Shown in pieces: positions 9,001-56,797 of a stretch of DNA of 64,000 nucleotides. The DNA comes from Trichosphaerium sp. ATCC 40318. Its lineage: Eukaryota; Protista; Tubulinea. The position numbers and the translations under genes are program-made. The notes beneath the pieces were generated by a model. It did no database searches. It was given only the letters and a program-made list of their open reading frames with translations, and was not told the origin of the DNA. Location: the NCBI GenBank assembly GCA_038496445.1, contig JALMLS010000354.1:310001-374000 (forward strand), in the 5' to 3' direction. Positions within the stretch are counted from its first letter, which is position 1; each line of letters begins with the position of its first letter.

Positions 9001-12000
9001 ATAATGACACAGTACCTCGATTCTCTTCGTTCAATACCAGTGACAGACAAGGTCGAATTTACAAACGCCTCACAAGATGAAGTTTCTCCTATAATTAAAA
9101 TACAAACTCAAATATCAGATATATTACAGCCTTTCTTCAAAGCCGGAGGCATTGTTGTACGTCTCGCAAACAAAACAATATTTACTTTCTTGAACCAATT
9201 GCCTAATTGATCTAGGACCGATCACTTCAACACGCTGCCTCTGCTACACATATCATGGAATTTGTTAGATTCCAGAAACTTTCTTCATTGTTATCCATCA
9301 TAAACGGAGGTACGTCACGTGTTATCGAAGTTTTTGGGTTTGTTTGTTTGTTTCACATCATGATCGCTCACAAGGCCCTTTCTCACTTTTTTTACAGGTA
9401 TTATTCAAATACTCAAGTATAATGCAACGAATTTTGATACCTGGTTATCGAAGGATATACTAAAACAGTACATGGAGAAACGTCTTATCTTTGCTATACT
9501 TTGGGGTTTTGCTGGTTCCATGTCTTTAAGAAACCGCGAAGAGTACAGTAGACACGTAGCATCTATCGCTCCAACAGATGTCCCTGACCCTAAGGGTCCT
9601 CCACTGATTGACTTTGGCCCAGATTTGACAACAGGAAAATGGGTACGCTCCACTTTCTAACAAGAGCTTTTGGACTAAACTTAGTTTGTTCTTCTAGAAA
9701 TTATGGTCAGATGGTATTGCTCAAGTTGATATTGATACACACTCTGTACTAAGACCTAATTGTGTTATACAAACTGTTGATACTACACGCCATGTTGAAG
9801 TACTTAGTTCATGGATTCAAGCAAGCCAACCACTTATTTTATGTGGACCTCCAGGTATGTTTCGTTTTCTTCAGTTTAGTAGTCGCGCAGGGTTTCTTAC
9901 TAACAACACTTAGGTTCTGGTAAAACTATGACTTTGGAGAGTACCCTCAGAGCTATTCCTGATCTTGAACTTGTTTCTTTGAACTTTTCAAGTGCTACAT
10001 CTCCAGAACTCATCATCAAGGTACTGTGATACTCACCCTCAACCCTGAATCATTTTGTTGCTCACTTTACAAACAGACTTTTGATCACCATTGTGAGTAT
10101 TCCAAGACACCAAAAGGAACTTTCCTTAAGCCTAGAAACCACAGTAAACGTCTTGTTGTATTCTGTGATGAAGTTAATTTACCTGAGAACGATCTTTATG
10201 GTACTCAAAAGGTAATAACATTTATAAGACAGATAGTTGAGCAAGGAGGATTCTGGCAACCTCAAGGCAAGTTAAAGATATCCTTCAGAAAATGTTCCTC
10301 CTTCTAACCTTGAAACAGAGCATATCTGGGTCAACGTCCAGAACATTCAATTTGTTGGTAAGTACATGCACGTTATGTTGTGAGTTTTGATAAGTTTTAC
10401 AGGCGCTTGCAATCCTCCCACAGATGCTGGTCGTGTTCAAATCACACCGAGATTTCTTCGTCATGCTCCTCTTTTATTTGTCGATTTTCCTGCACCTGCT
10501 TCTTTGAAACAGATCTACGGAACATTTAACAGAGCATGGATAAAGCTACTACCAAACCTAAAGCAATACGGAGACGCTGTTACTGATGTACGCCTTCAAA
10601 AATATCAGCTGCTCTTTTACTAATCGAGTGTTTAAAAAGGCAATGGTTGAATTCTACTCAAAGTCGCAGCAAAAGTTTACACCGGACTTACACGCGCATT
10701 ATATATACTCTCCTAGAGAACTTACTAGATGGATGAGAGCTATGTACAAAGCCGTAATACCTTGGGAAGGAACAGGAACCTTAGATGAGCTCGCAAGGTA
10801 ATCAACTTTTTTTACAAAAATAGAAATCTTACTTTGTTCCAAAAAGGTTGTGGGCACATGAAGGCTTACGTCTTTTCTCTGATCGCCTTGTCGAAGAAGA
10901 AGAACGTACATGGACTGCGGACTTAATAGACGAAGTAGCAAAGAAATACTTTCCAAGCATTTCTGATTCTACATTGAAAAGGCCTATTCTTTACTCAACT
11001 TGGCTAACAAAGAACTATCAATCTGTTGATCGTGAAGAGCTTCGTAAGTATGTTCAAGCAAGGCTTAAAGTATTCAATGAAGAGGAACTTGATGTCAAGC
11101 TTGTAATCTTCGACGAAGTATTAGATCACGTACTTCGTATCGACCGCGTTTTCCGTCAACCTCAGGTGAGATTTATTTTAAAATGCGAACACTGTGCTTA
11201 TTTATTTTAGGGTCACGCCTTACTCATTGGTGTTTCCGGTGGTGGTAAGACTGTATTGAGTAGGTTCGTTGCTTGGATGAATGATTGCGATTTCTTCACT
11301 ATCAAAGTCAACGCAAACTACGAAGCAGAAGACTTTGACCACGGTTAGATATTCATTGTTATCACTTTGTGTCTTATGTTTTTCTTAGATTTACAAGTCG
11401 TTATGAAGCGAGCTGGTGTTGATAGAGATAAAATATGCTTCATCTTTGATGAATCCAATGCAGTAGAGAGTAGTTTCCTCGAAGTATGGAAACTATCAAA
11501 CGAATCAATCCAACTAATTTTTTTCTAAATAGAGAATGAACACTTTGCTTGCTGGAGGTGAAGTACCTGGTCTATTTGAAGGAGATGAGTGGACATCACT
11601 TATGCATCAACTTAAAGACTCTGCTAATAAGAGAGTATGTATTTTAAGCGCTCGCTAAAAGTAATTTTTTGTGAAGGGACAAATGCTTGATTCTGATGAA
11701 GAGCTTTATGATTGGTTCTGTCAAGGAATTCGAAAAAATCTTCATGTCGTATTCACAATGAATCCAGCTAGTCCAGACTTTCATAATCGTTCTGCTACTA
11801 GTCCTGCTTTATTCAATAGGTGTACTTTAGATTGGTTTGGTGAATGGTCAGACACAGCGCTCTTCCAAGTACGAAACAGAAAGTTGCCTTCAGTTAAGTT
11901 GTTTTTCCAAAAAGGTCGGAGTGGCGTTCACTAAGGATATTGAAATACATGAAGATATTCGTAAAGCAACGATAGGATCACTTGTGTATACACACAATAC

Positions 12001-15000
12001 TATCCGTGAAGCAAACGAGAGATTGGCGAAGAAGGGTAGACATAATTTTGTAACTCCAAGGCATTACCTCGATTTCATCAAGCAGTTCAAATTACTAAGT
12101 ACGCAAGGATACAATCACGTGGTTCACTACAAATATTTAATTGCTTTGTTCATAGTCGATGAAAAACGAACAAAACTAGAAGAGCAACAACAACATCTTA
12201 ACACAGGTTTAAGAAAACTTTACGATACAGAAGAAAGGTGAGTCCAGTTCTCTTCTTGAAATATTTTTTTGTGACTCTTTTTCAAAGGGTTAAGATGCTT
12301 CAAGAGAGTCTTAGAGAAAAGAAACAAGAGCTACAAGCAAAGAACCTTGAAGCTAATACGAAACTAAAACAAATGGTTGCTGATCAACAAATTGCTGAAA
12401 CAAAGAAGCAAGAAGCTGAAAAGCTTCAAGTTAAAGTAGAAGCACAGAATGCAGAGATTGCTAGCCAAAAGAAATCTGCTTATGCTGATCTTGAGAATGC
12501 TGAACCAGCCCTTATGGAAGCAAAGAATGCAGTATCAGGCACGTCATTTCGAACAACTACATTTGAATAACAGATTCTTAAAGGAATTAAGCCTAAACAT
12601 CTACAATTTTTGAAGTCATTGGCAAGACCACCAGAGGCTATCAAAACTACACTGGAAGCTGTAGTGCTGCTACTAACAAAAAAGACAAAGGATTGGAAGG
12701 GAATCCGCGATGTTGTATTAAGCAAGGACTTTATTGGTGCGTTTTGGTTTAACGACTTGAGCTAACTGATTGTTAGCCCAAATTGTTGATTTTGACTCAA
12801 ACAAAATTGATAAAAAAACACGTGCAACGATAGATGCAAAATATATATCAGATCCTAATTTTACATATGAACGTGCAAACAGGGCTAGTGAAGCTTGTGG
12901 ACCTCTTGTTAAATGGATACGTTCAATAGTTGTATGTTTTCTTTTCATTTTTTTCAGAATTTTTTTTTATTCCCACGTGATTTGTTTATTGAATACTCGT
13001 TATTAGATGTACTCCAAAATTTTGCATAGTATCAAACCTCTTCGTATCAAAGTCGAGAGACTCGAAAAAGAGGGTGCAAAGCTTGCAGCTCAGCTTAAAC
13101 AAGTACAATCGAATGTTGATCAACTTCAGAAATCGATCGACACATATAAGGTTAGATTCTTTGTTTTATATCGCTTTATTCTCACTTGTGTCTTCTTTAT
13201 AGCAAGAATATGCTGTTCTCATTGGAGAGTGCGAGAAGATAAAAGAAGAAATGAATAAAGTAGAAACAAAAGTAACAAGATCTGTGTCGCTCTTGAAAGG
13301 ATTATCATCTGAGAAAGGAAGATGGGAAGATGAAAGTAAACAATTCGAGGTTCGAATAGAATTTGTCACGTAATACTTGCTATTGTTAGCTAACGATTAT
13401 AGGAACATATGTCTACTGTTGTAGGAGATGCTCTATTGTCCGCTGCTTTCCTAGCTTACGGTAAGTTTTTGTATGAACGTTTCACGTGATATTTACTTTT
13501 TTGCTCAACAGCTGGATACTATGATGAAGGATGGCGTGCTCTACTCATGAAAAAATGGGTTGGTCATCTAGAGAAGAGTGGCCTCAAATTCAAAAAAGGT
13601 TTGTCGATAGTTGAATACCTATCAACACCAGAAGAAAGGTAACATAAAAAACCTCACAAACAACTTCGCTTTTACAATCTAACATGTCTTTTAAGGCTTC
13701 ACTGGCAATCTGAACATCTACCAAATGATCCGTTATGTCTAGAGAACGCTATCATGCTTTCTAGATTCAATCGTTACCCTTGTCTTGTAGATCCAAGCGG
13801 ACAAGCCGGAAAGTTTATCATGCTTCACTACGCCGAGAAGAAAATCACAAAAACAAGTTTCCTGGACAAAGCGTTTATGAAGAACCTAGAGAGCGCCTTG
13901 CGCTTCGGAAGTACGCATTTTTTACGTCAACCTGGATTCATCTTTCTTAATTTTTTCTAGCTCCTTTGCTTGTTGAAGATGTTGAACAAATTGATCCAGT
14001 ACTTAATCCAGTACTCAATAAAGAGATCAAAAAGAGTGGCGGACGTATTCTTATCAGACTCGGAGATAAAGATGTCGATTTCTCTCCATCATTCGTTATT
14101 TTCTTGTCAACAAGAGAACCTAACCCTAAGTTCACACCTGGTACCTATCATTCTTTAAAACTAGTTGCCTTGTTGATTGTCCACTCTAGATTTATGCAGT
14201 CGTGTGACCTTTGTAAACTTCACCGTGACTCCGAACAGTCTACGTAGTCAGACTCTGGACGCTGCTCTTAAATCTGAGCAACCAGAAATGTACAGAAAAC
14301 GTATTGATCTTATCAAACTTCAAGGAGAATTCAAGGTAAGTACCATCTTGAAGAACAATGTTTATCTAAAAACTACTCTACAGGTGAAACTCCGAAATCT
14401 TGAGAAGGGTCTTCTGGATGAGCTAAACGCTATTGAAGGAGATATTCTTGAAGACGATAAAATCATTGGAACTCTAGAGGTACATTATTTCAAAAATATT
14501 TTGAAAATTAACAGTACTTCTGTAGAACTTGAAAACAGAGTCACAAGAAGTCAAGGCCAAGGTAGCTGAAACAGATCATGTCATGGAAGCCATTAGACAA
14601 AAAGGTACCAAAAATAACATGTTACTGCTCCATTGACAACCTTTAAGGACAATTGTATGCTTTATTGGCGAATGCTTGTTCAGAGATTTTCTTTACACTT
14701 GTTGAGTTGAATCGCGTACACTTCTTGTATCAATACTCATTGAATTTCTTCTTGGATGTATACAATGGCGTACTAGGTACCAGCGTCGCACAAAGCATGC
14801 CCAAGCAAATGGCTAACGTATTTGATTCAGAGAAACAAACAGGTTTAGAAAACGTAACTGAAATCGATGCACGTGTAAACCAATTACATGCAACTCTATT
14901 GGAAGAGATCTACAGTAAAGTATCGAGAAGTCTACTACAAGACGACAGACTATCTTTTGCTATCAGACTAGGCCAAATCAAGTACGTGAAGCACTACGAC

Positions 15001-18000
15001 AAGAAAACAACTTCTAATCACCACAATTAGGCTTCAAGCAGGCGCTGATAAGTTACCTTCAGAAGCCTTCTCCTTCTTTATTGGTGGCGGTGAAAGTACT
15101 ACAACTGGAGAATTTCCAAGTGAAGTTTTACGTCTCATGAACGAAGAGATGCGTGGAGTACTTTGGGAGATGAGAAAAATCCCTCAATTCAGTAAAGTAT
15201 TTGATCACATCGAGGTACGATTTACAAACAACTATTCCAAGACAATCTTATCTTATTCTCATTTCTTTAGAAACACCCTGGCGCATGGGAGCGCTTCTTA
15301 AGCGCCAATGATGCTGAAGATCATGTTCCAGATTGTTGGAATGCAGAAGCTGCAATATCAAAAGTGTTGACATCTTTCTTCCAATTAGTTGTTGGCAAAG
15401 TAAGTTTGGTCGAAATTAATACTTCAATTCTTCTTGTTGACACTCTCGTTCTATAAAGGCCTTCAGGGAAGATAAGTTACTAGAATTAGGACGTAGATTT
15501 GTTCTTCAAGTGTTTGGTGATGAATTCAATTCACTCGAAGACTTTGACTTTGGTAACGTTGTAAAGGTATGCCAAAGACCCTTCTTTCAGATGTATTACT
15601 AATACATTAATAAGAACGAAAGCAAGCCTGGTAATCCTCTATTGCTCATTTCAACTCCTGGTTACGATGCTAGTCCATATGTTGACGATCTAGCAGCTCA
15701 ACATCCAGAAGTCAGCTACAAGTACAACTACACATTGAAATACAAACGACTAACTTGTGGCTACTAGAGCTATTGCTATTGGATCAGAAGAAGGTTACGG
15801 ACAAGCAGAGACTGCTATAAACGAAGCATCAAGATTTGGTGGATGGGTTGCCCTTAAGAATGTCCACATGGCTCCACAATGGCTCACAACAATCGAAAAG
15901 AAAGTCAGGTCAATGAACAAGCACAAAGACTTTAGACTCTTCATGACAGCATCTATTCATCCTCACCTACCTCAAAGTCTACTCCGTTTATCGGCTATGT
16001 TCATGTTTGAACCGCCACCAGGAATTAAGGTAAATATCAAATACAGTCACGTTACTCGTATCTAAATTCCATTCTTAGGCGAATATTCAAAGATCTCTAC
16101 AAGAATGGGGAACTGCTAAGATGGATAAACAACCTATTGAAAGAGCAAGAGTGTACTTCCTTCTCGCATGGTAAGTTATTGGTTTTACAAAGAGCTTTGG
16201 TGTTCTGTTTTGGTTGTTAACTTAATGGATAGGTTCCATGCTGTTATACAAGAAAGACGTAGGTACATACCATACGGATGGTCTAAGATGTTCGAGTTTA
16301 ATGAAACAGATAAGAAAGTCGCTCAAAAATGTGTTGGTACGAATCTATCTTATTACATTAACTTGCGTTTTATCAACCACGTGCTTATTAAACATTAGAT
16401 TATTGGATTGGTTCTGTGAGTGAAGGAAGAGATACTGTATCTCCTGATACTATTCCATGGTCTGCTATGCGTCGCTTGCTAGGTCATACTATCTATGGTG
16501 GTCGCGTTGACAATGAGTTTGATCAAAGACTCTTAGACTCGTTCCTTTCACATCTCTTCCAACCAGACGCCTACAAAGACGACTTTTCTCTTGTTTTAAG
16601 TACAAGCCAAGATGGTAAGCCCATGTCCTTGTGAAGCAAAGTTTAAACCTCTCTAGAATTACAAGTCAAGCTGCCAAAGAGTACTAGAAGAGAAGACTTT
16701 GTGAGATGGGTTAGTTGTTTTTCTTACACCAAAACAGGACTTCTCGATGCTAATGTTTTTACTAGGTTTCTACGTTACCAGAGTGGACGCCTCCAGCATG
16801 GCTCGGTTTGTCTCCAAACGCTGAAGTGATTATACTCAAGACAAAAGCAAAACGTGTTGTGTTTAATCTACAACAGATGCAACTCCTTCAAGCCACCGAT
16901 GATGTTTCTGAACAAGTACTTTATTGTTTCAAGGTTGTAATTTAACTCACGCAATAGGAGGGTGGTGGAAATAAAGAAAAGCTAAAACAGCTCGAAACCA
17001 TAGCCACAGACTGGGTAAAACTGCTTCCTAAGGTAAGAAAAAACAGGTCCACGGTCTCGCAAGTTTGGCGTTCTGTCAAAGAAAAACATGGACTGATTTG
17101 TTTTGTAGGATATCAAATCTCCAACTGAAAAAGGAGCTGATAAATCATCTCCACTATGGCGTTACTTTAATAGAGAAGTAAATCAAGGCGCTTCACAACT
17201 CAAGAAACTCCACAAGGACCTTGACGAACTTACTCAGGTAAAACTAAAAGGAACCAGCCGATTGACAATTTCTTGACTCTTTTGCTCTTTTTTAGGCTTG
17301 TCAAGGCAAACTGAAGCATACAAATGATATCAGAGATCTTATGGATTGTATTGGAAGAGGTGACGTTCCAAAGGCATGGCTCAAATACGAGGTAAGAAAA
17401 AGCGAAGCTAACACAACAGAAATACTAATAACATCGGCGTAGATTTCACCATCAACACGTGTATCCGGATGGGTAAGGGATTTCACAAAGAGAACACGCC
17501 AGCTCACCTCAATTGGACAATCACTTGATGAAACACCAAAAGAGCAGCCAAGAATAAGCTTAAACATTGGGCTACTTCTTAATCCTGAACCATTCATCAC
17601 AGCAACACGTCAGGTAACTATTCAAAAAATATGATGTATTCATTTAATTAAATTCTTCACTAGGCTGCCGCACGTGCCAATGGATGGTCTCTAGAAAACT
17701 TAACTCTAAACTTGCGTATTGCTGACGAAGAGTTGAATGACGATTTACTAAAGAGTTGTCCAGCAGGAAGCTTCTACCTGAGCGGACTCAAGCTACAGGT
17801 ACAATTTATACATCTCCAAAAAGTAAATAACATACACAATAGGGTGCTGAATGGAAAGAAAACCACCTTGTCGTATCAACGTCTATGGAGGCTTCTATGC
17901 CACCGGCTCAACTTCTATGGGTAACCAACACAGACGCACCAAAAGACGAAGGGACAAAGGTAAAAGAACATTCAAAAAAAAACAAATTCTAATTTAGTTA

Positions 18001-22907: not shown

Positions 22908-24296
22908 TTAATTCCTATACTTTGTATAAAGTTGCCTGCGTCTAAAGTTGAAAAAATTGTTTCTCAACTTACTCACATCCACTGTTTTTTTCTGTCTACC
23001 ATTTCTGTAAATATTTAGACTTTTTAGTTCGCCATTCATTTCCCAAATCTTTTCTTCTCCTTCTTTCCTTCCATTGACATACCAACATTGACTCTTTGGC
23101 TTACCTGCATAATACCAATGCTTTTCTTCTTGTTCCTTGTTGCCATTGATATAAAAACAACAACTCCTCAGCCGTCCATTTTCATACCATGACTTCAGTT
23201 CTCCTTCCGGTACACCATTCTTATATGAACATTGCTTCTGTAGTTTACCGCCAACAGAAAAAACCTTCTCAATTCCTTCTTTACGACCTGACATATAAAA
23301 TGCTTGTCTGGCTAATGTTTTATTCTCATAAAAATCTTTCTTCTCTCCTTCAATCTTACCTTTTACATAACAGCATTGTGACTTTATTTGGCCATTTGTA
23401 TGCCATTCTCTAAACTCTCCTTCTTTAACTCCATCAACATAATAACAATGACTCTTTTCACGTCCATCCAAATACCAACAATGTTCTTCTCCTTCTATCT
23501 TACCGTTTATGTAAGAACATTGACTTTTTAAACAGCCACTCCCATGCCAGGTTTTTTGCTCTCCATCCTTCACCCCTTTGTTAAAAGCAGAATGAGTTTT
23601 CAATTGTCCTGTAGAATACCACTCCTTATCTTCACTTCTACCGCCAACACCAAGAGGGTAAACATGGCGACGCATTTTGCCATTGTCAAAGAACTGTTTT
23701 TCTACTTTGAACCCATCTACCATAGAGTATTCCTTCTCTAACTTACCGTCATCAAACCAGTATTTCGCTTTCACTTCTTCTTCTATACCATTAACAAAAT
23801 GACGATGTTGGATTAAGGTGCCATTCCTGTGCCATAACTTGTACTCTCCATGAATCTTACCATTTACATAAAAGGTGTGTTCATATAAAACCCCGGATGT
23901 TGTCCAATTCTTGTACTCACCATCAAGGTGATCATTAACAAACCAACATTGTTTTGTCAGTGAACCAAATTCTGTCCAAGTTTTAAAGTGTCCGTCTTTA
24001 TATCCATGAGAATACCTCATCTCTGTCACTTTTTGGTTACCATTGTACCTTATCCATTTACCTTGTTTTTTAAGCTCACGATCAAACCTGGAGCATACCG
24101 CAGCTACTTTTGATAACAGTGGCCATTTAATATAAACATAACTATCCAGGTCCATTATATCTAGTTGGAGCTCCACTGGAAGCAAAAGTGGACTCCTTTC
24201 ATCTTTTGTTTGGCTGTCAGCAGATAACTATTTCATTTATTAATAATAGGTAAACGCTACTAGCCTTACTCGTAGGTTATTACGTTTCAAAGCCAT
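22908..24296 (-). CDS. MORN-variant (MORN_2/YwqK-like) repeat protein with an F-box-like N-terminus; single 5' intron 24228-24269
   Basis: About 14 repeats of G-x-[KH]-[ED]-G-E-x-K-x-W-[YH]-x-x-G-x-L-x-x-x-x-x-Y-x-[ND]-G (~24 aa), preceded by LLPVELQLDIM. Exon 1 MALKRNNLR joins in phase 0 via gtaagg...aaatag. Confidence 0.85.
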
Positions 24297-28004: not shown

Positions 28005-30276
28005 TTAATCGCCGGCTACTAATCGTTACGCGTGTTACTTTTTTTTCATTCGAGTATAATAATAAATAACGTACTTGCTTTAGTGCTATCCACATCATCG
28101 CCAACTAGCCTCCGTCGAGACTTTCGCTTCTTACTTCTCTAATTTTAGTGAGTCGCCCACAGCTAATTTATTTTATTTGTAGGAACCTTTTTTTGTTTTG
28201 CGGATTCCATCACATCATTAGATTTTGAGGTTTTGCCTTGAGAATTTCGGTTTTTGGTTCCTTTTTCTTCGTTAACAACGTCCTTTTTAGCAGCTTTTGA
28301 TTTACGTAAATCCGCCTTTGGTTGATCGGAAGATTCAGGACTTGGTTGGGTTTCTTCTTTTGCTTCGGCAGCTTCGCTTTCCTCTGGCTTAACACCATTA
28401 GCCTCTTTACTTGACTCTTCGTCTTTGGTTTCAGCCTGACAAATTGAGTAAACTAAAAACATAGGGAGCTATCGTACTGCACCACCGGATTCTCCCGACT
28501 CTGCCGAACCCTCATCTGTGTTTGTTTTAGAAGGTATTTTAGTCTCTATGGCCTCATCGTCAGCAGGTTCTTCCTCTTCACTTTCAGACTCGTTGAATCG
28601 TTTTATTTTGGATTTTTTCCAGTTGTAGTCCCAATCCTTGAGGATTGATTAGTGCCGTATAAAAAAAAATTAAGAAACTAACTTTAAATTGTTCTTGTTC
28701 TTCTTCAGAGAGGGGGTACTTGTGCTTCTTTGATTTAGGCTCAAACTGTTCATCCAAGTCATAACTTCCATCAACGTGAGCTCGTTTCTAAACCCTTGTG
28801 AGTAAGGTAGGGAAAAACGAAAGCGTAATAATTTAAAAACGAAGTAGAAGGTATCTTACTGGATCTGGTTTCCAAGGCGCTTCAGCGATTTTATTCTCCA
28901 ATGCAGACCAATCTAAATGCTTAAAACAAGCGTGCTTCTTTAGCTCTTTAAACCCAAACCGTCTAGCAGGATTCTTTTGCAACAACCCAACCAATACAGC
29001 TTTAAAATTTGGGTCAATATTCCGTGGATAAGAAGGATGAGTCTTTTGAACATTTGCCTTCAAATCTTCAAAGTTACTTCCTGAAAATGGCAAACGACCA
29101 CAATAAAGTTCGTATGCTAATACACCAAGACTCCACCAATCTGCACGCTCATCATATCGTTGACGGTTCATGACTTCAGGCGCCATATATGGTCGGGTAC
29201 CCGCAACACCCTTGATACCGTTCGGCGCGAGTTTTACTGATAAATTAAAGTCTGTCAAGTGACAGTTGCCGTCCGAGTCAAATAAGAGATTATCCGGTTT
29301 GATATCCCTATGCATGTATCCATTTTCGTGAAGGTAGTTGAGAGAGAGCGCTGTTTGTACGACGTAAAAGCAAGTTCGAGTTTTTGAAAATTTTTTATCA
29401 TGGCGATAGTGAAACCGCACGTCACCACCTTGCATTAGATCTACAACCATATAGAGGTCATACGGCGATTGTAGCGCAAATCTACAAAATAGAATTAGTA
29501 CAAAATACAGCACATTTAATCTCTTTTTGGTGGTTTTAGAAGAAAACAAAACATGTTATAACGTTTGTAGAGCGATTTGATGATTTGTTTCAAAAAGAGA
29601 AGTTGGCGTTAAACTAATTTAGAATTTTATCACAGTACCTCAAATTTACGATTAAAGGATAATTTATCTTTGTGAGTAGATACGTTTCGTTCAGTACATT
29701 CTTTACCATCTTTTGATTCATTATTTTCCGTTTTTCTAAGCACTTCATAGCGTATAACTTCTTTGTATCTCTTCGTTGTACGGCATGTACCTACAAAAAA
29801 ACGTTAATAAATAGTATATTGGTTTTTGTCAAAAAAAGCGAAAAAATCTGCGCTCAAATCGAGCTGAGGTTGCCAGCACTCAACTACCGACAGTGCGCTA
29901 TGCGAATTATAATGTTTAAAATGCTCCTGCGGGTATTACGGTATGCTGAGCAGCGATTGTTTGGAGACACTAAAAACATCTTTTGTTGGCTTTGCATGCT
30001 TCGTACCTTGCCAAATGCTCCTTTTCCAATAACCCGAAGGCGATCAAAATGGTCTAGGCCAACTACCGACGGATAAGCTTAAGGAGATTTAAAATGCTTT
30101 TTTTAATCAAATTCGCGGCTCGTAGGGTACTTTGGTGCTCACGCACAAACACGAACGGCAAGAAATTAAAAAAAAAGCTCTTCGTAACAAACAAACGCCA
30201 ATTCATTGTGTTATGTCATACTGTTAATAGGGTCTAAATTGAGGGGTTTTTTCTCTCCGCCTACTAGACAACCCAT
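28005..30276 (-). CDS. STK32: AGC Ser/Thr kinase of the STK32/YANK family with acidic/basic C-terminal extension
   Basis: MGC start (N-acylation-type), LDHFDRLRVIGKGAFGKV, YAMK, YMVVDLMQGGDVRFH, HRDIKPDN, the family-typical DFN instead of DFG, GTRPYMAPE and DWWSLGVLAYEL. Confidence 0.9.
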
Positions 30277-36398: not shown

Positions 36399-37082
36399 AT
36401 GGCTGAAAAACAAGGTGATCCGGTTTTTGATAAATATTCTTACGAACCAAAGCATTGCCTACTTAAACGAGACAGTGTAAAGTGTATTAAACCAGAAAAT
36501 AGAAAATATACTAACAACTCAGTAAACAGTTCTGTTTACTGCTCTATGCTTCTTCGTTATAAAATAACAGACTACATAATACCAGAAGAACTCATTCAAA
36601 TGATAGTATCATTCATACTTGTACGTACAAGTCCAACACTTAACCTAATATACGTACATTACAACTACGAATTCAGATTCACGTGCCCGAAAACAGTGAC
36701 AACTCTTGACCTTGCCAGAAGGTTTAAACAATGCCGTATACGTGCTACCATGCCCACAGATTCATTCCTTGTTGCAGTAAAACTACGACACGATGGTTAT
36801 AAACTAGAGCTTCTTCAAATGGGCGGGAGGATAAATGGTGGATTAAACAGCAACAATTATTATGCTGATTGGACTGTTGGTCCTCTTTCAGAAGACGAAG
36901 TTGAATGGCTCAATAATAGAACCCTTGAAGAGGCAGGATTAGAAGATGGCGATTATATTAGTGGCGACTATGTATATAAAATGGATGAACTGATGAGAGG
37001 GGTACCTGTTTCCTATGAGAGGAACTCTAGCCATTGCGAAAATGTTGGAGATTTAATGGCACGTGGTTGCTACAGAGAGTGA
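36399..37082 (+). CDS. Intronless 227-aa protein with an F-box-like motif and a ubiquitin-like C-terminal signature
   Basis: Uninterrupted ORF containing IIPEELIQMIVSFI (F-box-like) and RTLEEAGLEDGDYI (Ubl-like). Confidence 0.65.
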   Translation: MAEKQGDPVFDKYSYEPKHCLLKRDSVKCIKPENRKYTNNSVNSSVYCSMLLRYKITDYIIPEELIQMIVSFILVRTSPTLNLIYVHYNYEFRFTCPKTVTTLDLARRFKQCRIRATMPTDSFLVAVKLRHDGYKLELLQMGGRINGGLNSNNYYADWTVGPLSEDEVEWLNNRTLEEAGLEDGDYISGDYVYKMDELMRGVPVSYERNSSHCENVGDLMARGCYRE

Positions 37083-38941
37083 GCAAGACCTTTTTCTATA
37101 ATGGGTATCTAAGACTATGTGCGTTCTGTCATATTATTGCAGGAAACTACCTTATGTGATACTCGTTCATGTTGTAATATCAATAAACTTGCTTAAAGCA
37201 GAACTTGTAAACTAAGAAATGACAGATAACAACCAAAGGTTTCTACCAAAAGATGTTCTCAATTAACGTTAGAAGCATTACAAAGCTTAGAAAGTTGCCA
37301 ACACGGTTTCGTGCTCTAGCTAGCTGAGGACATAAATACTGAAAAGTATGCTTCTTTAGGAATTTCTCCTTAGTATGCCAAGCTTGACTGTACAGAATTC
37401 AGCCAATAGATTTTTATAATACGCTACTATTTTCTTGCACAGCCTTATTTAAGGAACTGCTGGGGTTTTTAACGGCGCTCATAAGTATGTAGCACCAAAA
37501 AAGGTGTCACAAAAAAAAACTGCAATTGGCGAAGCTTTCTACTTTCGCTTTTACCTTACTGGAGCTACTACACGCCATTTAAACAAAGTAGTATACGACC
37601 CAACCTATGTGAGATGAAGTTGAAAGCGGCGAGAGCTTTTACAAGCCATAAGACATGCTGGTAACCGTTCAAAATGTACCACACCCCAACATTTGCATTC
37701 TAGTCCTTCACAAAAAGGTTTGCATTCTATGACAACAAACAACGTACTACTACTACGTAATATTGCTGACGACAGTCTAGTGGTTGTACTTTAAGTTGTT
37801 TCAAAGTTATTTAATGAAACAAATATTGTCACACAGAAGAAGGGTTTTTACGAGTTACGGTTTCATACTACTTGCGCATGAGCGACAAAAACAATACCTT
37901 CTATGCCTACCATACGCTTTAGTAGTATTCTAACTGTGAGAACAAGAAAGGAAAACGTTCGTTAGTGGGCTAAACCTTTTTGGGAATATTCAGGCTTTGT
38001 AAGCTGTTTGGACTTGGTGTAGAAATATGCGCTTTGTGGCATACACGTGAACACACGCAAGGGATAATGGTAAAAGAAGATAGTGGAATTTGTCTTGTGT
38101 ATGTAGAGATAGCTAGTTTTGATTAATAGGTTTTGCTAGGCGTGTGGAAGAGAGTTCATTCAGGAGTTTAGATTACAATGTATGTCCGGATCTTCGCTAT
38201 TTGTCAACAGCCAGGTGTTTTATAAATAGCTGTAACGTAAGTTACAAAGTAGAACAGTACCCCGTGAAGGTAGAGTAGTGCTGTAAGGTTTTTACAAAGT
38301 GTCCTCTTGTACATCCTTCATGTGCAACTCAAAGAAAAATATTTCTATGCAAAAAAAAACAAGTCAAGGTTTTCTTAGCGTTGTGCATATTTTAGCGTTG
38401 GAACTATGATGGGAAACCACGAAAAAAAAGAATGCAACGGCACAGCAACCTCCAGGTGCAGTCACATCGAAGCATCGGAAGAATTATATTTCCCCAATTC
38501 ACCCGACATTGAATAAATTTAAGAAAATACCCGCAAACGCTAAACTATCCCCCACAGCACTTAGATACGTATCTACAGACTTATTCTTAGGTTTACCAAA
38601 AGAGTCGTTCCGCGGGAAGCTTAAAAAGGAGTTTACGTTCTTTCTTTCAACTCGAACTTCTCTCGCAATTCCGAACTTGTCTCCACTACGCTATTTTCCA
38701 AAGATGCTTATTCCATCTCGCCAACACATATAGGACAGTTTCATAGCGAAAACCAACAGTAATTTTGGGTCTACAGCCTCAATAGCACATTCCAAAAAAG
38801 GAATCAGAGGTCAGAACTTTCGTGGTTACGTTCTTACGGCAAAAATAATCTGTATTTCGTTCATCTACAACAACTATTTTATTTCGTATATTTACATCTG
38901 TTTTTTTTTTCTTTATGTTACAATATAGAGCCTCATCGCAT

Positions 38942-39799
38942 TCACAACACTATCGGACTAAAGTACTTTGCTCTTGGAGAGGGTAACAAAGACTTATTGT
39001 TTCTCATTGATAGTGGCGATTTGTTGCACGAATCGTGCATCAACGTCGTAATAAACTGAATTCTGAGCTTATGATGAGTGCTGGTTGCAGTTAAACAAGT
39101 TTGGTCTAGTGATCTCCTAGGCTTCGAAAGAGCGCTCATAACGATATCAAAAGGCGCCATAGTGTTCCTTTTAGACTGTCTAAGACGAACCATTAGTCTA
39201 CAAAAAACAAAAAAAAAAGGAACAAAAAAAAAGCAAAACAAGAAAAAGGGAACAAGCAAAACAGTTTGAAACCAGAAAAAAAAAAAAGAAGACGTACTTT
39301 CTATTTACTCTTTTGCATGGTGACTTTCTACGTGTTGATACTACTTTCTGGCATGAAGGATGTTGATGTTCTCCTTTGTAAATTACATCTCTAAAGGGTA
39401 TCATTAGTACCAAGCGGACGCAAGAATATGAGCGTAAAAGTCACTCAAAAACTCAAAAACCAAAAAGAGAGAAAAAAAAACGCTAGTTGAACGATGAATT
39501 CAAAACGAACTAGAAAGTATCTGTACGTACAAACAATGTGGTGCGTAACAGTTTCTTTGTACTTGTTTTCTCGCAGGACAACCTTGAGTAAAACAACGAT
39601 AGTATGTGCGTTTAAAGGTCATTCCTTTAATCTGTCTACCGCCAATGTTCCTACAAGAGGTATAAGAACAATAATAACTCTAAGGTCAACAGACACTTTA
39701 TACGTACCTCCACCTGTACCCATCAATGGTGACGGGTGAGTTATAAGGAATAGTAACTTTTGTAGTTGGAGCACGAGGTGTTGTTTGAGAGCCGCACAT
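38942..39799 (-). CDS. Atypical WRKY-domain transcription factor (WRNIGGR variant); introns 39651-39707, 39391-39530, 39198-39297
   Basis: The spliced domain is DGYRWRNIGGRQIKGMTFKRTYYRCFTQGCPARKQVQRNCYAPHCLDVIYKGEHQH, with exact C-x4-C-x23-H-x-H spacing. Confidence 0.88.
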
Positions 39800-41775
39800 T
39801 TCTGGTTAATGAAAATTTCAACGTCTATTTTTGCTTACTTCAGAAATTACGAATTTTATCGATTTTCGGCTATACCATTTTATCCTTAACTTCTATTACC
39901 TAAATCTAACATGAAACAAAAAGAACGGCGGTTGGGTAGTGTTGAACACTTTCCCTTTTTTGGCAGTATAGCAAAAGGGTACCGGATGTAGTCAAAACGT
40001 ACAAGTGGTGATATTTATACGTGTTTGCAAACTACGAGAAAAGGTCTACAGAAAAATTTGCCCGAACACTCTAAAAGTAAATAGGTTGTTCCCAAATTGG
40101 TTTCCACATCAAATATGACGTCTATAGAACAGACAAATACGACCTAAAGTGTTTCTAAAACCAAAATCAAAAAAAGTACGAATACACCCGACCATACGCC
40201 TAAAAGTACTACTAAAACGCCTAAAATAAGCTTAAAAAGTGTTACTGTGCAGGTGTAGCTTTTTACGCCAAAACGTGTTGTAATTTGACCCAATCGCGTT
40301 GTGAGCGCATACACAACGACAAACGGCGTAGATTTCGCAAAATTGTGGCAAAAAAACCTTTCAGCAAAAGACGTGTCTTTTGACATACACGTGTACACAA
40401 GAGTCGCCAACGGTTGATACAACGGTAGAAATAGTATCTATAAAACGTTGTGCTACGTTCCTACAACGAACTGATTTGTCAGCGACATGCCAAAATAGTC
40501 CGGGGAGCCAAAATGACAGGTCACCTTAAAAAAGTCGAAAAGGTATCGGTAACGCTCGTTTTTATGCTATACTGTATGAACCGGTGCTTTCCGTAGCGTT
40601 TTATAGCGAACTAAAAAAAACTTATTCCGCGTCTAAAAAAAGCTCAGGAACTACCATAGAAGTGTCGGGGTATGTTGCTACGTTCTTTTTGCATATACAA
40701 CTTATCTAGAGTTATAGCTAGGGCTGATACCGGATATTTAAGTTTTAGCGGCTAATTTACCCGATTTTTTTGTCTGTCAAACCTCATGATTGCTACAGCG
40801 TTTAATTAACGTTATAGAGATCAAGGACTACCTTTTGTGTAGTTTTGCACTTTTGGAAAGAGAATACTTTTTTTGTAGCACTTCCGATACGGTTTTGAAT
40901 CTCGGTACATGTGTCATTAATAGGTTCACTACAAATGCAACGTTTTGTTTTCTTAACGTGTTCCCATAGGTTTTTTTTTTATCGAAACACGCGTCGCAAC
41001 GATACCTTATTTATAACAACAACAGACAAAGTGGTACGCAAACAAACCCGAAAAACAAACGATACAGAAACACGTAAAACTTCACAAACTCGCACGAATT
41101 TTTACGCTTTTTTTAGATCTTTTTGTCCAATCTATGAACCAAATTAACATACATACTTTGTACCTATGTTTGGCGCAATGGTACAAATCATTGTGTTTGT
41201 GCGGTAGATATATTTTAGCCGCTGTGTTCACGTGAAACATCTTTCTTAGTTAGGTAAACAAATATCGCGTTATAAGTCCAAGCCTCTTACGAGTAGACCA
41301 GCGAGTTTTAGACTACGGGATGCAGCTTGCAACACGTAGCAAACTAGCGACAATTTGAATCAAATCGCGGAAATTAAAGTACCGGCCATGTTGTAGCTAA
41401 AATAAAGTTGCATGAACAAGTCATTGACTTTTAGGTTACAGTTTTCCCGGGTACGAAAACTCATTGAATTTGTATCGATTCTATATTTTCGCGAATATGA
41501 ACATTGTAAACAAATCAACCTAGCAAACTTTTCAATGAACAAAATGTGTCAAAAAAAAAATGTCAAATGTCATTGCACTGCACCATGATCAAATACAATA
41601 CTTCACCTAGGTGAAATTTAATTCACTAGTCAATTAGTAAATTATTGAGATATCTTTCACACAAAGTTGTACAAGCAACTTCGCCTACTTGTCAACATTG
41701 TTTTTTTTTTCGTTTGCTTTTTTTTTTTTGTGTTGCACAAATTGTACTTGAAAAGGTCAAAGCGGTAATGTAAAC

Positions 41776-43656: not shown

Positions 43657-44474
43657 ACTTGACTCCTTTTTTGTAAAACAAAACTAAGTTTTCTTTTTTT
43701 AGTTTGTCAAAATACGCTGTTGCTAACTACAACTGTTGTCCTTTTGGAAACACAATTTTGCGTTAGGTTGGCTTGACAAACATGACATTGAACGAAGTTT
43801 CATTGACAAATAAAGTGACATGTTGCAACCATTTTATTTTTTTTACTTTAATGCAAAATTGTGCCAATATGATTCTCTTTCTGCTATGTACAAGTAATGA
43901 GAATACTTCATGTTATAAATAACGCTGGCTCCTCTATTTTAGAGCCTCCTCCTTTAGTGTCCTCAGATTGTTTCGTTGGTCTAGTGTCAACTTTGACACT
44001 TGCTCTTGATTTATGTTTTTACCGAAAGATCCTGATTGCTTAGACAGTACGTTGATGTAGTCTTGCCATTTTGTAACGAACCTAATAAACGAATATAAGT
44101 GATTTCAGTTGTAACAAAAGAAAAAGCTGCATTCTCAACGACAAATGGATTATATTAACGTACTCTAATCTGTGGGCTGTCTTTGCGTCTTTTATTTTTT
44201 TGAACTCTTCACGGACATAATTATCGCCGATAATACGCATGTCCTTCGGTAATTTAACCTTATGAATGCCTAATACACTATTATATTCAATGTTTGTGGA
44301 TATGTACCGCTCACACGTTTATTACGTACGTAAAATGTTTCGGTACAACTGAAGTACTACAGGCCCTGACATTTGCGATGGTTGTAAAAAAGTTTCGTAA
44401 CTTGAAAAAAGTACAATTGCTGTCGTCAACCAAAATCGCATTACAAATGCAGTCTGGCGCACCAATTGACGTAC

Positions 44475-47400
44475 ATGGGCAATTACGGACCCTTTAAGAG
44501 GGAAGCCAAGAGCAATGATGCTCAAAAACCCAAGGTCGACTGGAACGCTCTAGATCCTGTCTCCAAACGCCTTGATCTCAAAAACAAGAACATACGCGAT
44601 ATACCTAACATTGTATCTCAATTTAACCAGCTGACATGGCTCAATATTCCACACAACAAACTCATAGCTCTGCCTGAAGCGCTATGCGATATAATTAGTC
44701 TGCGAACCCTGAGAGCACAAGGGAATCAAATTGAGGCGCTAACGCCGTCTTTGGGCCGGTTGACTAATCTGACCTGTCTCGATCTCGCAAAAAACCAGCT
44801 GATCGACGTTACACCCGATATAGGCGAACTACATAACCTTGTGGAATTAAATCTGCATTGGAATAAGATAAAGGCGGTTAGTGACACTCAATACGCCCAA
44901 CACTCACTAGAGTACTAGCTTCCTGTAGAAGTGGGCAAATTGACGAAACTGAGACACTTAAATCTGTACATTAACAGGCACGTCAAATTTACACTCGGAG
45001 TTAAACTAAACGTGCTGTATAATATGCGGGTAAATTATAAAAAAAACATACTCACAAAAAAAAAAACAATCAAATTGAAATAATCCTTGTTGCGGAAGTA
45101 AAATGTGCTCTATTTGATTAGTTCATGTTTTATCTCTTATGTTACTTTCTTTTAAAGTTAAACGCATTAACAACCTTTCACATCAATATTGTACACCGCC
45201 ATCAAAAACCCCGCCTACCTCTCGTTGTGAAGACAACGAGAGGTTTTGATTTTTTTTTCTTTTGTTTATTAACGTGTGAAATTAGATTAACGGATTTTGC
45301 TGCAATGGAAGATCTAACAGCACTACAAGAACTCGACCTTGCTCATAATAAGTTGACATCCTTGCCAGAAGGATTACTTGTTTTGGAAAACCTCACGTCC
45401 CTTAACTTGGCAGGAAACACAATAGATACGCTCCCACCAGAGGTACATTCACAATCTTTCTTATTGAAAAGTGTCAAGTGTCACTTTTTTTTTTTTTTCG
45501 GATAATTTTAGGCACGCTGTGTACATTTCTCACTCAAGTCTGTTTTTAGATTTCTGCATTTACAGCTTTAAAACATTTGGATTTACAGTGTAACAACATC
45601 AAGAATATACCAACTGAAATTGGGCTACTTAACCTTAAATCGCTTAAATTGCGATCAAATCAACTGAGCGTTTGTCCTGATACAATGGCGAATTTAACTC
45701 TTCTACAAGTACGGAACAAAAAAACCAAAACATGATGTTAACTACGTTGATATCAATTGCGTATTGGTTGTTTTACAAAATTTTGTTGATTTTTGTTAAC
45801 GCAATTGTCTCTACGCGCGTAGCGCCTTTTAAAATTGTTAAGAATATTGTTTGGCGTCTTTACTAATTAATTAAGGATTTGTATGTCGAAGATAACGAGC
45901 TTTCTTCATTACAATGGGTTGGAAAAATGACTAAAATATCTTCACTATTCCTCTATAACAATAACTTAAAATTACTGCCATCATCTATTGCAAATCTTGA
46001 AGGTCTCAGGATACTTGACTTGAGTCACAATAACTTTTCTAAGCTTCCAAAGTCTCTTGGCAAAGTATCATCTATTGTTAATTTACTTGCTATGAATAAT
46101 AACATGAAGAGCGTGGACCCAAGGGCATTAGCAGGTGCGCACGTTTGTTGACGTTTTTTTTTTTTCCAAAGTCAAACCGAAGATTTTATTTCTTTACCGC
46201 CGCCTGGTGGTAGTGCGTGTAATTAATTGCTTGTTTTCTTTTTTGGATTACATTTTATTTTATCTACCGTCTGATTGAAGTTTCAATGCTCTAACAATGG
46301 CGTTATACGTGAATTCACGAAACGGAAGTTCTCGTTAAATTTTTAGTATTATGTTTAGTAACATCAAGCCTAACTCTTTTAAAAGGTCTTCAGTCTTGTC
46401 AGGATCTAAACTTATCTCACAATATTATAACAGTATTACCACCTACTGTAGCATCAATGGTTGAGTTGCGTAAGCTTATTCTCAACAACAATAAGCTTTC
46501 CAACTTTCCTGTAACGAAGGGTATCACAGATTTAAGGTGGCTTGAAGTAGGCGATAATAATCTTACAAAATGGCCGAATGTTACACACCATACATCATTA
46601 TTGACGCTTAATGTATTTGGTAATAAGCTCACCAATGTCCCAGATCAACTTGAGAAACTTGCATCTCTTCAGAGTTTATACTTATCATACAATCCGATTT
46701 CGAAGTGGCCTGCTATACCAGTAATGAAGAAGATGACAAGTATAACAATTTTACATTTGGGAGGATGTCAGTTGAAAAAAATACCTGATGCTGTTTATGC
46801 TTTACCAAACTTGAAGGATTTATGTCTATCAAATAATTTACTTGATGTCGTACCCGATGAGATTGGCCAATTAGCAAATTTACAAGGCTTAAGGTGTGTG
46901 CTTAAACAAGTTTTCTTTCTTGAAATCTTTTCACGTGTTTACGTCTTATAATCACTATACTGCTTTGATGTATTCATAAGCATTTTATTTTATTTTTTGA
47001 AAGTATCTACTCTTTGTTAAAGCGGGAAAAAGCGCTTTAAGAGCCAGAGATTGAAGATTTTTTTTTTCGGAAAAAAAAAGGCTTTGTTGTCGTTTCATGC
47101 TTTTGTACCGTTTCTTATTACGTTTTAGAATGACTGCAAATATTATTACAAACGTCTGTGATGGCATAAAGGATTTAGCAAAACTACAAGAGCTTGATCT
47201 GTCCCATAATAATTTAGTTGATCTACCAGCTGTTTTTTGTACTTTAACAACGCTCACTGATCTTGATTTATCTGGAAACGGCATTCAATATCTTCCACAG
47301 GAATTTGATAAATTAATACGTATCCGTCACCTTAAGATTGCATTCAATCACCTCCGTAAAGTACGTACAAGTTCTTTTGAATACCAAGAAATCAATCCGC

Positions 47401-50918: not shown

Positions 50919-53900
50919 ATGACTTACAAAGAATCTAATCCAGTGATGCAGTCTAATATTGCTTTCCATACAGCTCCTTCTACGCTTACAACGCAGAATA
51001 CATTGTTGAGGCCGGAGATTTTGACACCAGAATTTGTTGCTAAGGAGTTGAGTAACACTATGCATACAGGTGGTCATTCTTGGTCTACAACACATGTAGC
51101 TGATTGGACAACTTCTGACGCTGTTGATTGGTTAGTGAATGGGTTGTCCCTTCCTCAGTGGCGCGTTTTGTTTCAAAACAAAAACATTAATGGACAAATT
51201 TTATCAACGATTACTGCAGATCAGTTGAGCAATTATGGCATAATTAATAACCAACATTGTAACATGATTGCCAGCGCTATTCGAGAACGTATAGATGCTG
51301 AGAACGAAGCAAAAGATGCAGCAACTGAAGCTTCAAAAGAAAGGGTAATAACAGTTTTCGTCTTTTTTTCGCGCAGCTGTTTATCTTCTTTAGAGCCGAA
51401 CACCTGAGCCACAAGTTCGACCTAATCCTACCCCAAAAGCTCCATTGGATATGGCTCCTGGCATTCCTGTGCCTTCAAAGGGTAATCCATTTCAAGCGAA
51501 GCGACCTACAAAGAAAGCGCCTGTAAAATATCGAAAAGGACCTGGAGGAAAGAGACCGAAGAGACCATTAAAAGGAGTTAAAGGAGGTAAAGGTGCATTC
51601 AGAGGGAAGAAGCGGCCTATGCGATTCATGGGAAAGGGTCCTAAACAGCCAAGACTTCGTACGCGATCGTCCCCTGCTCTACCAAAAAAAATGATAAAAA
51701 AAGGTAGCAGTTATATATTGATAGTTATAAATATGTATATTTATATTGTAAAGTATTTTTTTTTTTGAGATTATGGCTTTACTGAGTATAATATAGCCCC
51801 ACCAAAGAAAATGCCTATGAGACCAAAGGTTCCTTATAGACCAACAGCACAACCTGGATCTGTAAAACGTGTTCGAAGATTAACAGGTGCGCATTTGTTG
51901 TATTTCGAAGTTGCTTATGGAGTCTTTTTTTTTATAGCTGTGAATGTTGCGGATTTAGTTAAGTCGAAATTTACGTGCTTGAAGAAGTGGGTTGCTGGCA
52001 AATCTTCACGCATTGTTATCAACGCTACAAATAGTAATGGTGAACAAATTTTGACGGGAGGCTGTGACTTTGTTGTTAATGTGAATGGTCCACAGAAGCA
52101 ACGGTATTCATTTCAGATTTTACTGTTTGCCTCTAACTTAGTGTTTCTAGCGTTGTAGCTAAGGATTCAAGGAATGGTATTTATATCGCAGATTGTAGTG
52201 TTTCTGTAGCTGGTTTGTATGCGGTTTCTATAACATCATGCAACAGACACTTAAGCGGTAGTCCATACAAGGTACTTTGTTTGTTCAAAAGTCTGCTAAA
52301 TTTACATTTCTTTAGGTTGTTGTAGAACCTGGTCCTGCTAGCGCTAAAGATACAACGGCTAGTGGTGCAGGTATAATATGCCCAATGTCAGCACAATCTG
52401 CTTCTTTTTTTATCCAGAGTAAGGATATGTACGGTAACGACAAGACAAGTGGTGGCGACAATTTTAGCATTAGTATAAATCATGGTGGCATACCTCTGCC
52501 GCCAGAGATACAAGATTTCAAGAACGGAACCTATTCTGTATCTTATATGCCTGAAAAGGCAGCAGATTATGTTATAACAGTACAACTTGGTGGTGTTAAC
52601 ATTAGTGGAAGTCCATTTCAAGTCACAGTAACTCCAGGTACTTTTTTTTCTTTGAACTCTATACAAAAAATTGGAAATTTCACGCTACAGTACTGAGGCT
52701 TTAACGATTTACTTCTATGGGTTTTAATTAATGTTTTGTTCTTTAGGTCAAATAGATCCTAGTTCATGTACTTGTGAGGGTCAAGGGTTGGCATCATGCT
52801 TTGTTGCAAACCCTAGCACATTTTTAATTGTATCAAAAGATAAATGTTCCAACAGGCTTGATTATGGTGGTGCTAAGTTTCATGTTGAGATGAAAGGCCC
52901 TGGAAAATGGAGAGGTAATATAAAAGATCATAGAGATGGTACATACACAATATCATACATGGTACGTCTTCCATCTTTTTGACAATATTGTTTTTTTTGG
53001 CTTCAATGTTGATTTTATCGTACAGGTGTCGCATCCTGGTACATACGCGATATATGCCTCACTTAATGGGAAACATATAAGGGGTGTACCTCATAAGGTA
53101 TGTGTGATATATGTGCATAACGGTAGATTCTAAATCCAGGTCGTAGATGAGAGCAGAACCTCGTCCTGCTAATACTGCACCTACTAAGAATACAAATTTT
53201 GGTACACCTTCTCCACATAGGCGGCAACAGAATACGCGAAAGAATCCTGTTATATATTTACAGTCAGTAATACGTTCATACAATGCGAGAGAGACTATGC
53301 GAGTACTTCGATTACGACGTAAAGCAGTTCAAGAAATTGTTAACTCTGAAATTAAATACCTCTCAAACCTTGGCATACTCATTGATGTAAGTCACGTGTT
53401 TATTACGAAGAATAGGAGTGTTATACATTAATTGATTAACTTTATTCTTTAGGCGTTTTTGAGGCCCATTAAAGAGAAAGTATTGAGGACTGATCCTTCT
53501 GGTAAAAGCGAAGAAGATGGCGTTATGACACAAGCTACATATGCCTTGATTTTTGGCAACATTGAGTTTATCCACGCACTTAATAGTGATTTCTGTGCTG
53601 TACTTAAACGAAGGGTTGCGCTTACGTATAATGCAAAGTTATCAGATTGCTTCATTCGTGTGGTAAGCCAATATTTTGTCTAGTATAATTTTGAAGTTTT
53701 CTAGAAAAAAAATCAAGTTTTTTTAGTTGTGGTTTCACCTTTCTTACACGATTTGTTTTTTCAGGCAACTTCATTCAAAACTGCGTATACACAATATGTT
53801 AATAAGTATGAACAAGCAATTAATACATATAAATGGTGCTTCGACCGTGATAAGAATTTTAACGATTTTATTAAAAAAAATGAACAACACCCTAAGCATG

Positions 53901-55908: not shown

Positions 55909-56797
55909 ATGTCCGAAGCGCCAAAGTACAGCCTGTGGAAGACTCCAGTGTACTTACCGTATTTACAACCACCATTGACTCCTGAAATTGTAAAACGCAC
56001 AGAGGAACAACTAGGCTATAAACTACCAGAATCATACATAAAAATACTAAAAGAACAAAATGGCGGCTATGTCAAATACAATCACCCTGAATGCGTATTA
56101 ATAGACCAAATTCATGGTATAGGACCAAATTTCCCTTCTATAACAGATCCAAACAGTATACAAGCGGATTCTGAATACGTCAGTTTTGATTGCAATCACT
56201 TGGTACGTTTTTTGAAGATTTTTTTACAAGTCTTGCTTATTCGTGTTTTTGAAGGTACCGTTTGCAGGTGTAGGTACTTTTTCAGTTTGTTTCGACTATC
56301 GCGATAATGCTAAAGAGCCTGGTGTAACTTATATTGATATGGAATGTGATATAGAAAAGAAATTGGCAAAATCATGTAGTGAATATTTATCATCATTGGA
56401 ACTTTCTTGTTTCGGTTATAATGATATTTGGGTTCTAGAGACAACAGCTCCAATCGAAAAAGTAGTACAAGAGATAAGCAATAAGATTGGTCTCACATTT
56501 GCTCCACCCGACTATTCAAGTGGGTACGCTGATTATACAGCACGTACTGCAGAACCAGGTTACTTTACTGTTTCTCCGAATTTTGCACCGAAAGGACTTG
56601 TCAGGGAAGATCATCCGAATTACAATACTCTAAAGAACATGTCAAAAGGAAATACAAGTCGTTTTGAAGGTATTTCTGAAGACTGGATGCTTGTTAATGG
56701 AAGCATATTAACACCAGAATTTCTTGAAAAAATTAACAAGTTTTTCACAGTCAAGCATTTAAGTAAGTATTATGACAATACAAAGTATGTACCTTGA
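55909..56797 (+). CDS. Bacterial-type SMI1/KNR4 (SUKH) family protein, one intron 56203-56254
   Basis: YLPYLQPPLT...EEQLGYKLPESYIKILKEQNGG, IHGIG, LVPFAG, CFDYR and EPGVTYID are SUKH-family motifs. The phase-0 GT-AG intron joins the two ORFs. Confidence 0.85.

Follow-up and report, generated by a model that had tools for sequence, protein, structure and literature searches.

A transcribed WRKY gene with the heptad WRNIGGR in a non-plant, probably amoebozoan, genome

WRKY domains are a textbook example of a transcription-factor family in which an invariant strand ties its members to a single DNA word. The locus analyzed here lies on the minus strand of a 64-kb stretch of DNA (hereafter the window) and appears to encode such a domain with the heptad WRNIGGR in place of WRKYGQK. 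This raises the question of whether it is a genuine, expressed gene of the genome in which it is found, and, if so, what a domain with such a strand would be expected to read.

A transcribed and spliced WRKY gene

A sequence-only reading of the locus had proposed a WRKY domain split by two introns and missed by the ORF track. Its coordinates and strand proved right to within a base or two when the sequence was read again, and the oversight is easily accounted for, since the ORF list gives the gene only as pieces of 33, 40 and 71 aa. We find four exons on the minus strand, running from an ATG at 39799 to a stop at 38942-38944, with the following parts:

38910 to 39807, minus strand: spliced transcript contig of 583 nt, spanning the entire coding sequence (contig alignment)
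39708 to 39799, minus strand: coding part of exon 1, with the ATG at 39799-39797, 30 codons to DGYRW, plus AG, the first two bases of the Arg2 codon of the heptad (translation, contig)
39635 to 39712, minus strand: coding span of the heptad WRNIGGR, with intron 1 inside (translation)
39651 to 39707, minus strand: intron 1, 57 nt, GTACGT..TAG, phase 2, within the codon of heptad R2 (contig joint)
39531 to 39650, minus strand: exon 2, with heptad residues 2-7, KRTYYRC, both zinc cysteines and GCPARKQVQR (Pfam, translation, PDB alignments)
39391 to 39530, minus strand: intron 2, 140 nt, GTACGT..TAG, with an ACTAAT branch-like site, phase 2 (contig joint)
39298 to 39390, minus strand: exon 3, with DVIYKGEHQHP carrying the two zinc histidines, then the basic patch RRKSPCKR (translation, contig)
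39180 to 39297, minus strand: intron 3, 118 nt, GTACGT..TAG, with ACTAAT (contig joint; absent from the sequence-only reading)
38942 to 39179, minus strand: coding part of exon 4, a basic tail rich in Ser, Thr and Pro, with the stop TGA at 38944-38942 (translation, contig)

When joined by a local script, these exons give a 543-nt coding sequence whose single stop is terminal, and a predicted product of 180 aa (20.7 kDa, pI about 10.5) that is very basic and has a single WRKY domain, at residues about 24-82. An in-frame TAA is present nine bases 5' of the ATG (39808-39806), and the contig has no joint there, which makes the ATG at 39799 the likely start.

The transcript contig comes from a public run of 53,766 contigs and 17.6 million letters that looks like a transcriptome. 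It maps to 39807..38910 with three joints that correspond to the removal of the three introns, all of them CT..AC on the plus strand, that is GT..AG on the strand of the gene. A contig lacking three canonical introns must derive from RNA, which shows both that the gene is transcribed and that the splicing model is right. The contig skips 39651-39707 and 39391-39530 exactly, and the two introns that had been proposed within the domain are therefore real, including the 39651-39707 junction that the sequence-only reading had singled out for confirmation on RNA. An acceptor for intron 3 at the AG of 39198, which would give an intron of 100 nt, is ruled out, the transcript using 39180. The contig differs from the window at only two sites, 39590 and 39755, both third codon positions and both synonymous (Phe and Val). 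These differences suggest that the contig stems from another strain or allele, and give a weak hint of purifying selection on the gene.

The identity of the domain is clear from exon 2 alone (39 aa), which matches the Pfam WRKY family PF03106 with an E value of 3.1e-10 and 40.6 bits (cut-off 21), over profile positions 10-41 of 59. This bears out the proposal of a classical-type WRKY domain in a non-plant genome. PF03106 is the sole Pfam family matched by exon 2 even at E 10, and a degenerate DNA pattern made from this exon finds one match in the window and none in 100 shuffles. The zinc cysteine codons lie in exon 2 (39595-39593 and 39580-39578) and the zinc histidine codons in exon 3 (39368-39366 and 39362-39360). 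Together they form C50-x4-C55-x23-H79-x-H81 in the spliced product, which confirms the zinc finger that had been claimed and falls within the classical C-x4-5-C-x22-23-H-x-H arrangement. The canonical DGYRW, KRTYYRC and PARKQVQR are likewise read in the translations of exons 1 and 2. The heptad occupies residues 30-36 of the predicted product, W being coded by 39712-39710, R by 39709-39708 together with 39650, and NIGGR by 39649-39635. Translation of the transcript-supported splice thus reproduces the replacement of K, Y, Q and K by N, I, G and R.

Origin of the gene

All library matches of exon 2 among the best 150 of 390 that are WRKYs are of plant or green-algal type, and one could consequently take the gene for something non-functional in its host, i.e. 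a plant or algal contaminant, a recent transfer or a decaying copy. We regard this as very improbable, and several lines of evidence have largely refuted it. First, the best single-domain matches reach only about 32 bits and 45-56% identity (among the best 150 of 390). Second, the base composition of the coding sequence (GC 0.405, GC3 0.348) matches that of seven neighbouring ORFs (GC3 0.30-0.36). Third, GTACGT stands at the start of all three introns, and ACTAAT lies 8-14 nt ahead of the acceptor in two of them. The window contains 63 copies of GTACGT, where dinucleotide shuffles give 21.5 +/- 5.1. This hexamer is enriched about three-fold and is probably the preferred donor of this genome.

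The positions of the introns tell the same story. Plant WRKYs of groups I-III have a conserved intron, either of PR or R-type, which precedes the zinc finger, or of VQR or V-type, which follows the second Cys (PMC4350883, PMC3834811). Neither is found here: intron 1 interrupts the heptad itself, and intron 2 falls in a Leu codon 16 residues past the second zinc Cys. Because the introns are off the plant PR and VQR positions, a recent transfer from a land plant is disfavoured. Decay is also contradicted, the frame being intact, the transcript spliced and the sole changes between contig and window synonymous.

Contamination is further contradicted by two genes of the same window:

about 8668-15030, plus strand: large, intron-split dynein heavy chain, with AAA_5, DYN_lid, AAA_8 and AAA_9 ORFs (Pfam)
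28833-29549, minus strand: 238-aa ORF with an STK32/YANK-like AGC kinase domain (Pfam, homology search)

To our knowledge, flowering plants have no dynein heavy chain. The best named relative of the STK32-like kinase is from Rhizamoeba saxonica, an amoebozoan (EukProt, 45% identity); zygomycete fungi and animals rank next. We conclude that the WRKY gene is native to a non-plant genome, and that this genome is probably amoebozoan.

A different concern is that the domain might not be a classical WRKY at all, but a transposon-derived member of the wider WRKY-GCM1 group (MULE/FAR1-, FLYWCH- or GCM-like). Babu and colleagues are said to have reported in 2006 that WRKY-GCM1 domains are often carried by transposases, which would give some credit to this origin. 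The Pfam result speaks against it, as FAR1, FLYWCH and GCM are absent even at E 10. Moreover, no terminal inverted repeats or repeated copies could be found within 5 kb of the gene, where only A/T runs are present, nor could a second WRKY copy be found in the 64-kb window, and a transposase ORF is absent. We hold that such a derivation is hardly credible, and a transposon origin is rejected on the repeat search within 5 kb.

Expected DNA recognition by the WRNIGGR strand

Compared with WRKYGQK, the heptad of the native gene has W1, R2 and G5 identical, a conservative replacement of K7 by R, and N, I and G in place of K3, Y4 and Q6. What these may mean can be judged from the crystal structure of AtWRKY1-N, whose heptad is numbered W1 R2 K3 Y4 G5 Q6 K7 (PMC7026264). 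R2, K3, Y4, G5 and Q6 contact the thymines of TTGAC, mostly by apolar contacts; K7, termed absolutely conserved, forms hydrogen bonds with two guanines on the other strand; and R131, Y133, R135 and K144 grip the DNA backbone, the Y133A, R135A and K144A mutants having lost binding (PMC7026264).

Exon 2 aligns without gaps to AtWRKY1-C (2AYD, 32 bits), AtWRKY4-C and AtWRKY1-N (6J4E). In the alignment with 6j4e_B, the residues R, Y, R and R stand opposite R131, Y133, R135 and K144, the last being a change of K to R. By sequence comparison, exon 2 has a profile score above the cut-off, and the domain has the zinc ligands and the DNA-contact residues outside the heptad that are expected of a classical WRKY, while its heptad is neither WRKYGQK nor a close variant of it. 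The backbone grip and the scaffold are therefore intact, and what has been rewritten is the portion reading the TT of the W-box.

The reading that we favour, and consider probable, is that the gene encodes a small nuclear zinc-dependent factor that would bind DNA sequence-specifically by the WRKY beta-wedge, at a preferred site other than TTGACY. Since the WRNIGGR domain retains its zinc site and the residues that define the fold or hold the backbone, DNA binding would be expected, with the first beta-strand inserted into the major groove as in plant WRKYs. In keeping with this, AtWRKY1-N mutated to R2A, K3A or Y4A still binds DNA (PMC7026264), so that some of the altered positions tolerate change. 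In the W-box TTGAC, the thymine methyls are touched by the side chains of K3 and Q6, which would be lost by the changes to N and G, and the preferred site would thus most likely not be the canonical W-box. The R at heptad position 7 could still bond guanines, and the target site possibly keeps a G-containing core. A nuclear location is suggested by the basic patch RRKSPCKR immediately after the WRKY domain and by the 99-residue tail, which has 20 Lys and Arg against 3 Asp and Glu. The tail also contains several Ser-Pro and Thr-Pro sites, and a Pfam search of it gave no family.

It may be asked whether the function is not simply that of an ordinary WRKY, in which the changes in the heptad would be tolerated and a W-box-like GAC core still read. 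Arginine commonly reads guanine, which makes the conservative K7 to R compatible with this idea, and R2 and G5 are retained, as are the four contact positions outside the heptad. In addition, GAC is the invariant core of the W-box (PMC7026264; PMC3834811), and the binding retained by the R2A, K3A and Y4A mutants of AtWRKY1-N (PMC7026264) fits here as well. However, the Q6A mutant of AtWRKY1-N loses binding (PMC7026264), a single Q-to-K change is already enough to shift specificity in AtWRKY11 and AtWRKY50 (PMC3834811), and in WRNIGGR three base-contacting side chains are altered simultaneously. Retention of the ordinary function is thus unlikely in our view.

Conversely, the protein could have kept the WRKY fold and lost DNA binding, acting through protein contacts, for instance by pairing or competing with canonical WRKYs or as a module resembling a decoy. 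Some residues that plant WRKYs need are indeed replaced: binding is lost in AtWRKY1-N with Q6A and K7A, and K3A abolishes binding by AtWRKY4-C (PMC7026264). A strand with N3, G6 and R7 might by analogy bind DNA weakly or not at all. The PDB matches of exon 2 also include integrated WRKY decoys of plants, such as RRS1. Nonetheless, the backbone-contact residues and zinc ligands are all kept, as is G5, which permits deep entry into the groove, and the protein is strongly basic and has no partner domain. This makes a purely protein-binding role quite unlikely, and the DNA-binding factor with a site other than the W-box remains our preferred reading.

Relatives among known WRKYs, and surroundings in the window

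We searched 1.84 billion representative proteins with exon 2 (E up to 0.001) and obtained 390 matches. With the exception of one repeat protein without a WRKY domain, the best 150 of these 390 are of plant or green-algal type, and the heptads of their domains are canonical or nearly so (275 WRKYGQK and 16 WRKYGEK, plus scattered single changes), and the named matches that we looked up belong to flowering plants and green algae. Neither an N at heptad position 3 nor the string NIG occurs in any of the best 150 of 390. This part of the list is crowded with multi-WRKY-domain proteins, and the absence holds only for close relatives, of about 42 bits or more; a single-domain relative of 34-42 bits may stand among the other 240 matches. 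The WRNIGGR protein itself is absent from the representative library, and such protein libraries do not hold the intron-split genes of unannotated genomes.

Other searches gave the same picture. ESM Atlas returned no usable match to exon 2, and a word search using the surrounding frame of 59 aa, which is free of stops, gave no candidate among proteins of 33-103 aa. The exon-2 DNA pattern had no match in metagenome contigs. An intron-less pattern, DGYxW-x-N-[IV]-G-x-R, had two in the same contigs, about the number expected by chance, one lacking a zinc finger and the other lying at the very end of a human-gut contig. A DNA-pattern scan of viral contigs gave a single match, attributable to chance. 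In the literature, we could find no paper with WRNIGGR or five similar heptads, nor any on amoeba WRKYs since 2016. Within the limits of the literature, the best 150 of 390 library matches and the metagenome contigs, the WRNIGGR strand is thus found nowhere else. The suggestion of an undescribed subfamily, made in the sequence-only reading, fits these results.

The closest structurally solved relatives are plant group I domains (AtWRKY1-C, 2AYD, being the best solved match, then AtWRKY4-C, 1WJ2/2LEX, and AtWRKY1-N, 6J4E), which belong to the same Pfam family and share with the WRNIGGR domain DGYRW, K/RxYYRC, GCPxRKxVxR and C-x4-C-x23-H-x-H. An R preceding W and a spacing of x23 are features of C-terminal domains, whereas the IYKGEHxHP tail is typical of N-terminal ones; identity to each is about 40-42%, and the WRNIGGR domain falls clearly in neither. 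It differs from plant group I by having WRNIGGR for WRKYGQK, and by being the only domain of a 180-aa protein.

Outside plants, WRKYs have been reported in diplomonads, dictyostelids, Acanthamoeba, Fonticula and Mucoromycota, some of them falling outside the plant groups (Rinerson et al., 2015; PMC4350883). The novelty of a WRKY gene in this lineage is therefore only partial, since both amoebozoan WRKYs and variant non-plant heptads were already published (PMC4350883). The amoebozoan ones, from Acanthamoeba castellanii and dictyostelids, are probably of the same supergroup as the host of the WRNIGGR gene, and are, as far as their published description allows them to be set beside it, mostly two-domain and group I-like (PMC4350883).

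Among the variant heptads, the fungal type of Mucoromycota, WKNNGNT, comes with an odd zinc finger (PMC4350883). It is a single domain and has N3 and G5 in common with WRNIGGR, but its zinc finger is C-X6-C...H-X3-C and its heptad ends in N and T, in contrast to C-x4-C-x23-H-x-H and a final G and R in the protein described here. Its zinc spacing being classical, and N3 and G5 the only residues in common, identity with the fungal type is rejected. The C-terminal domain of Giardia, WKKYGHK (PMC4350883), and the plant WRKYGKK and WRKYGEK are natural heptad variants in otherwise classical domains. These keep K3, Y4 and K7, whereas WRNIGGR alters all three plus Q6.

Taken alone, the gene adds a further non-plant WRKY to those already known from its group, and is thus a modest extension. 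Its value lies in the fact that four of the seven reading residues are altered, with scaffold and backbone contacts kept, in a natural expressed domain, which lends itself directly to asking how much of the reading head can be rewritten and which DNA is recognized as a result. More tentatively, and as a possibility that we would not rate as the likelier outcome, the sequence may be the first sight of a multi-copy, amoebozoan-specific WRKY clade whose strand, W-x-N-[IV]-G-[GR]-R, reads another DNA word than the W-box. If true, this would represent a natural re-targeting of the WRKY beta-wedge, and the gene's own intron positions would speak for WRKYs having long evolved on their own in amoebae, and not for a recent acquisition from plants. 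Were the variant common to paralogues and to other amoebae, a distinct non-plant branch would be added, which would bear on the debate on lateral transfer versus descent of non-plant WRKYs.

Concerning the rest of the window, the following features were also recognized:

22908-24185, minus strand: 425-aa ORF with MORN_2 repeats, E 3e-29 (Pfam)
36399-37082, plus strand: 227-aa ATG-started ORF, the closest neighbour beyond the 3' end of the WRKY gene (ORF list)
44466-46951 and 50919-51407, plus strand: leucine-rich-repeat ORFs and a SAM-domain ORF (domain matches)
56243-56797, plus strand: ORF with a weak SMI1/KNR4 match, E 0.007 and 17.4 bits, under the cut-off of 25.4 (Pfam)

The 227-aa ORF matches no Pfam family and has no exact copy in a collection of 15 billion proteins, and an exact look-up of two neighbouring ORFs found neither in the protein collection. 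An Rfam search across the window gave nothing. The 2 kb upstream of the WRKY gene contain five W-boxes, against a window average of 1.4 per kb, too few to interpret. The argument of the sequence-only reading that gene-free flanks suit a regulated transcription factor is likewise a weak one.

Finally, an 18-nt word, CATACACGTG[AT]ACACA, has exactly two copies in the 64-kb window, at 38040-38057 and 40384-40401, and these flank the WRKY gene, about 870 bp past its 3' end and about 580 bp upstream of its start. They sit within a 33-nt direct repeat of 76% identity (38023-38055 and 40367-40399). The window holds 55 copies of the hexamer CACGTG, where shuffles that preserve dinucleotides hold 9.5 +/- 2.9, and the flanking word could either serve as a common regulatory or boundary element or simply result from this excess.
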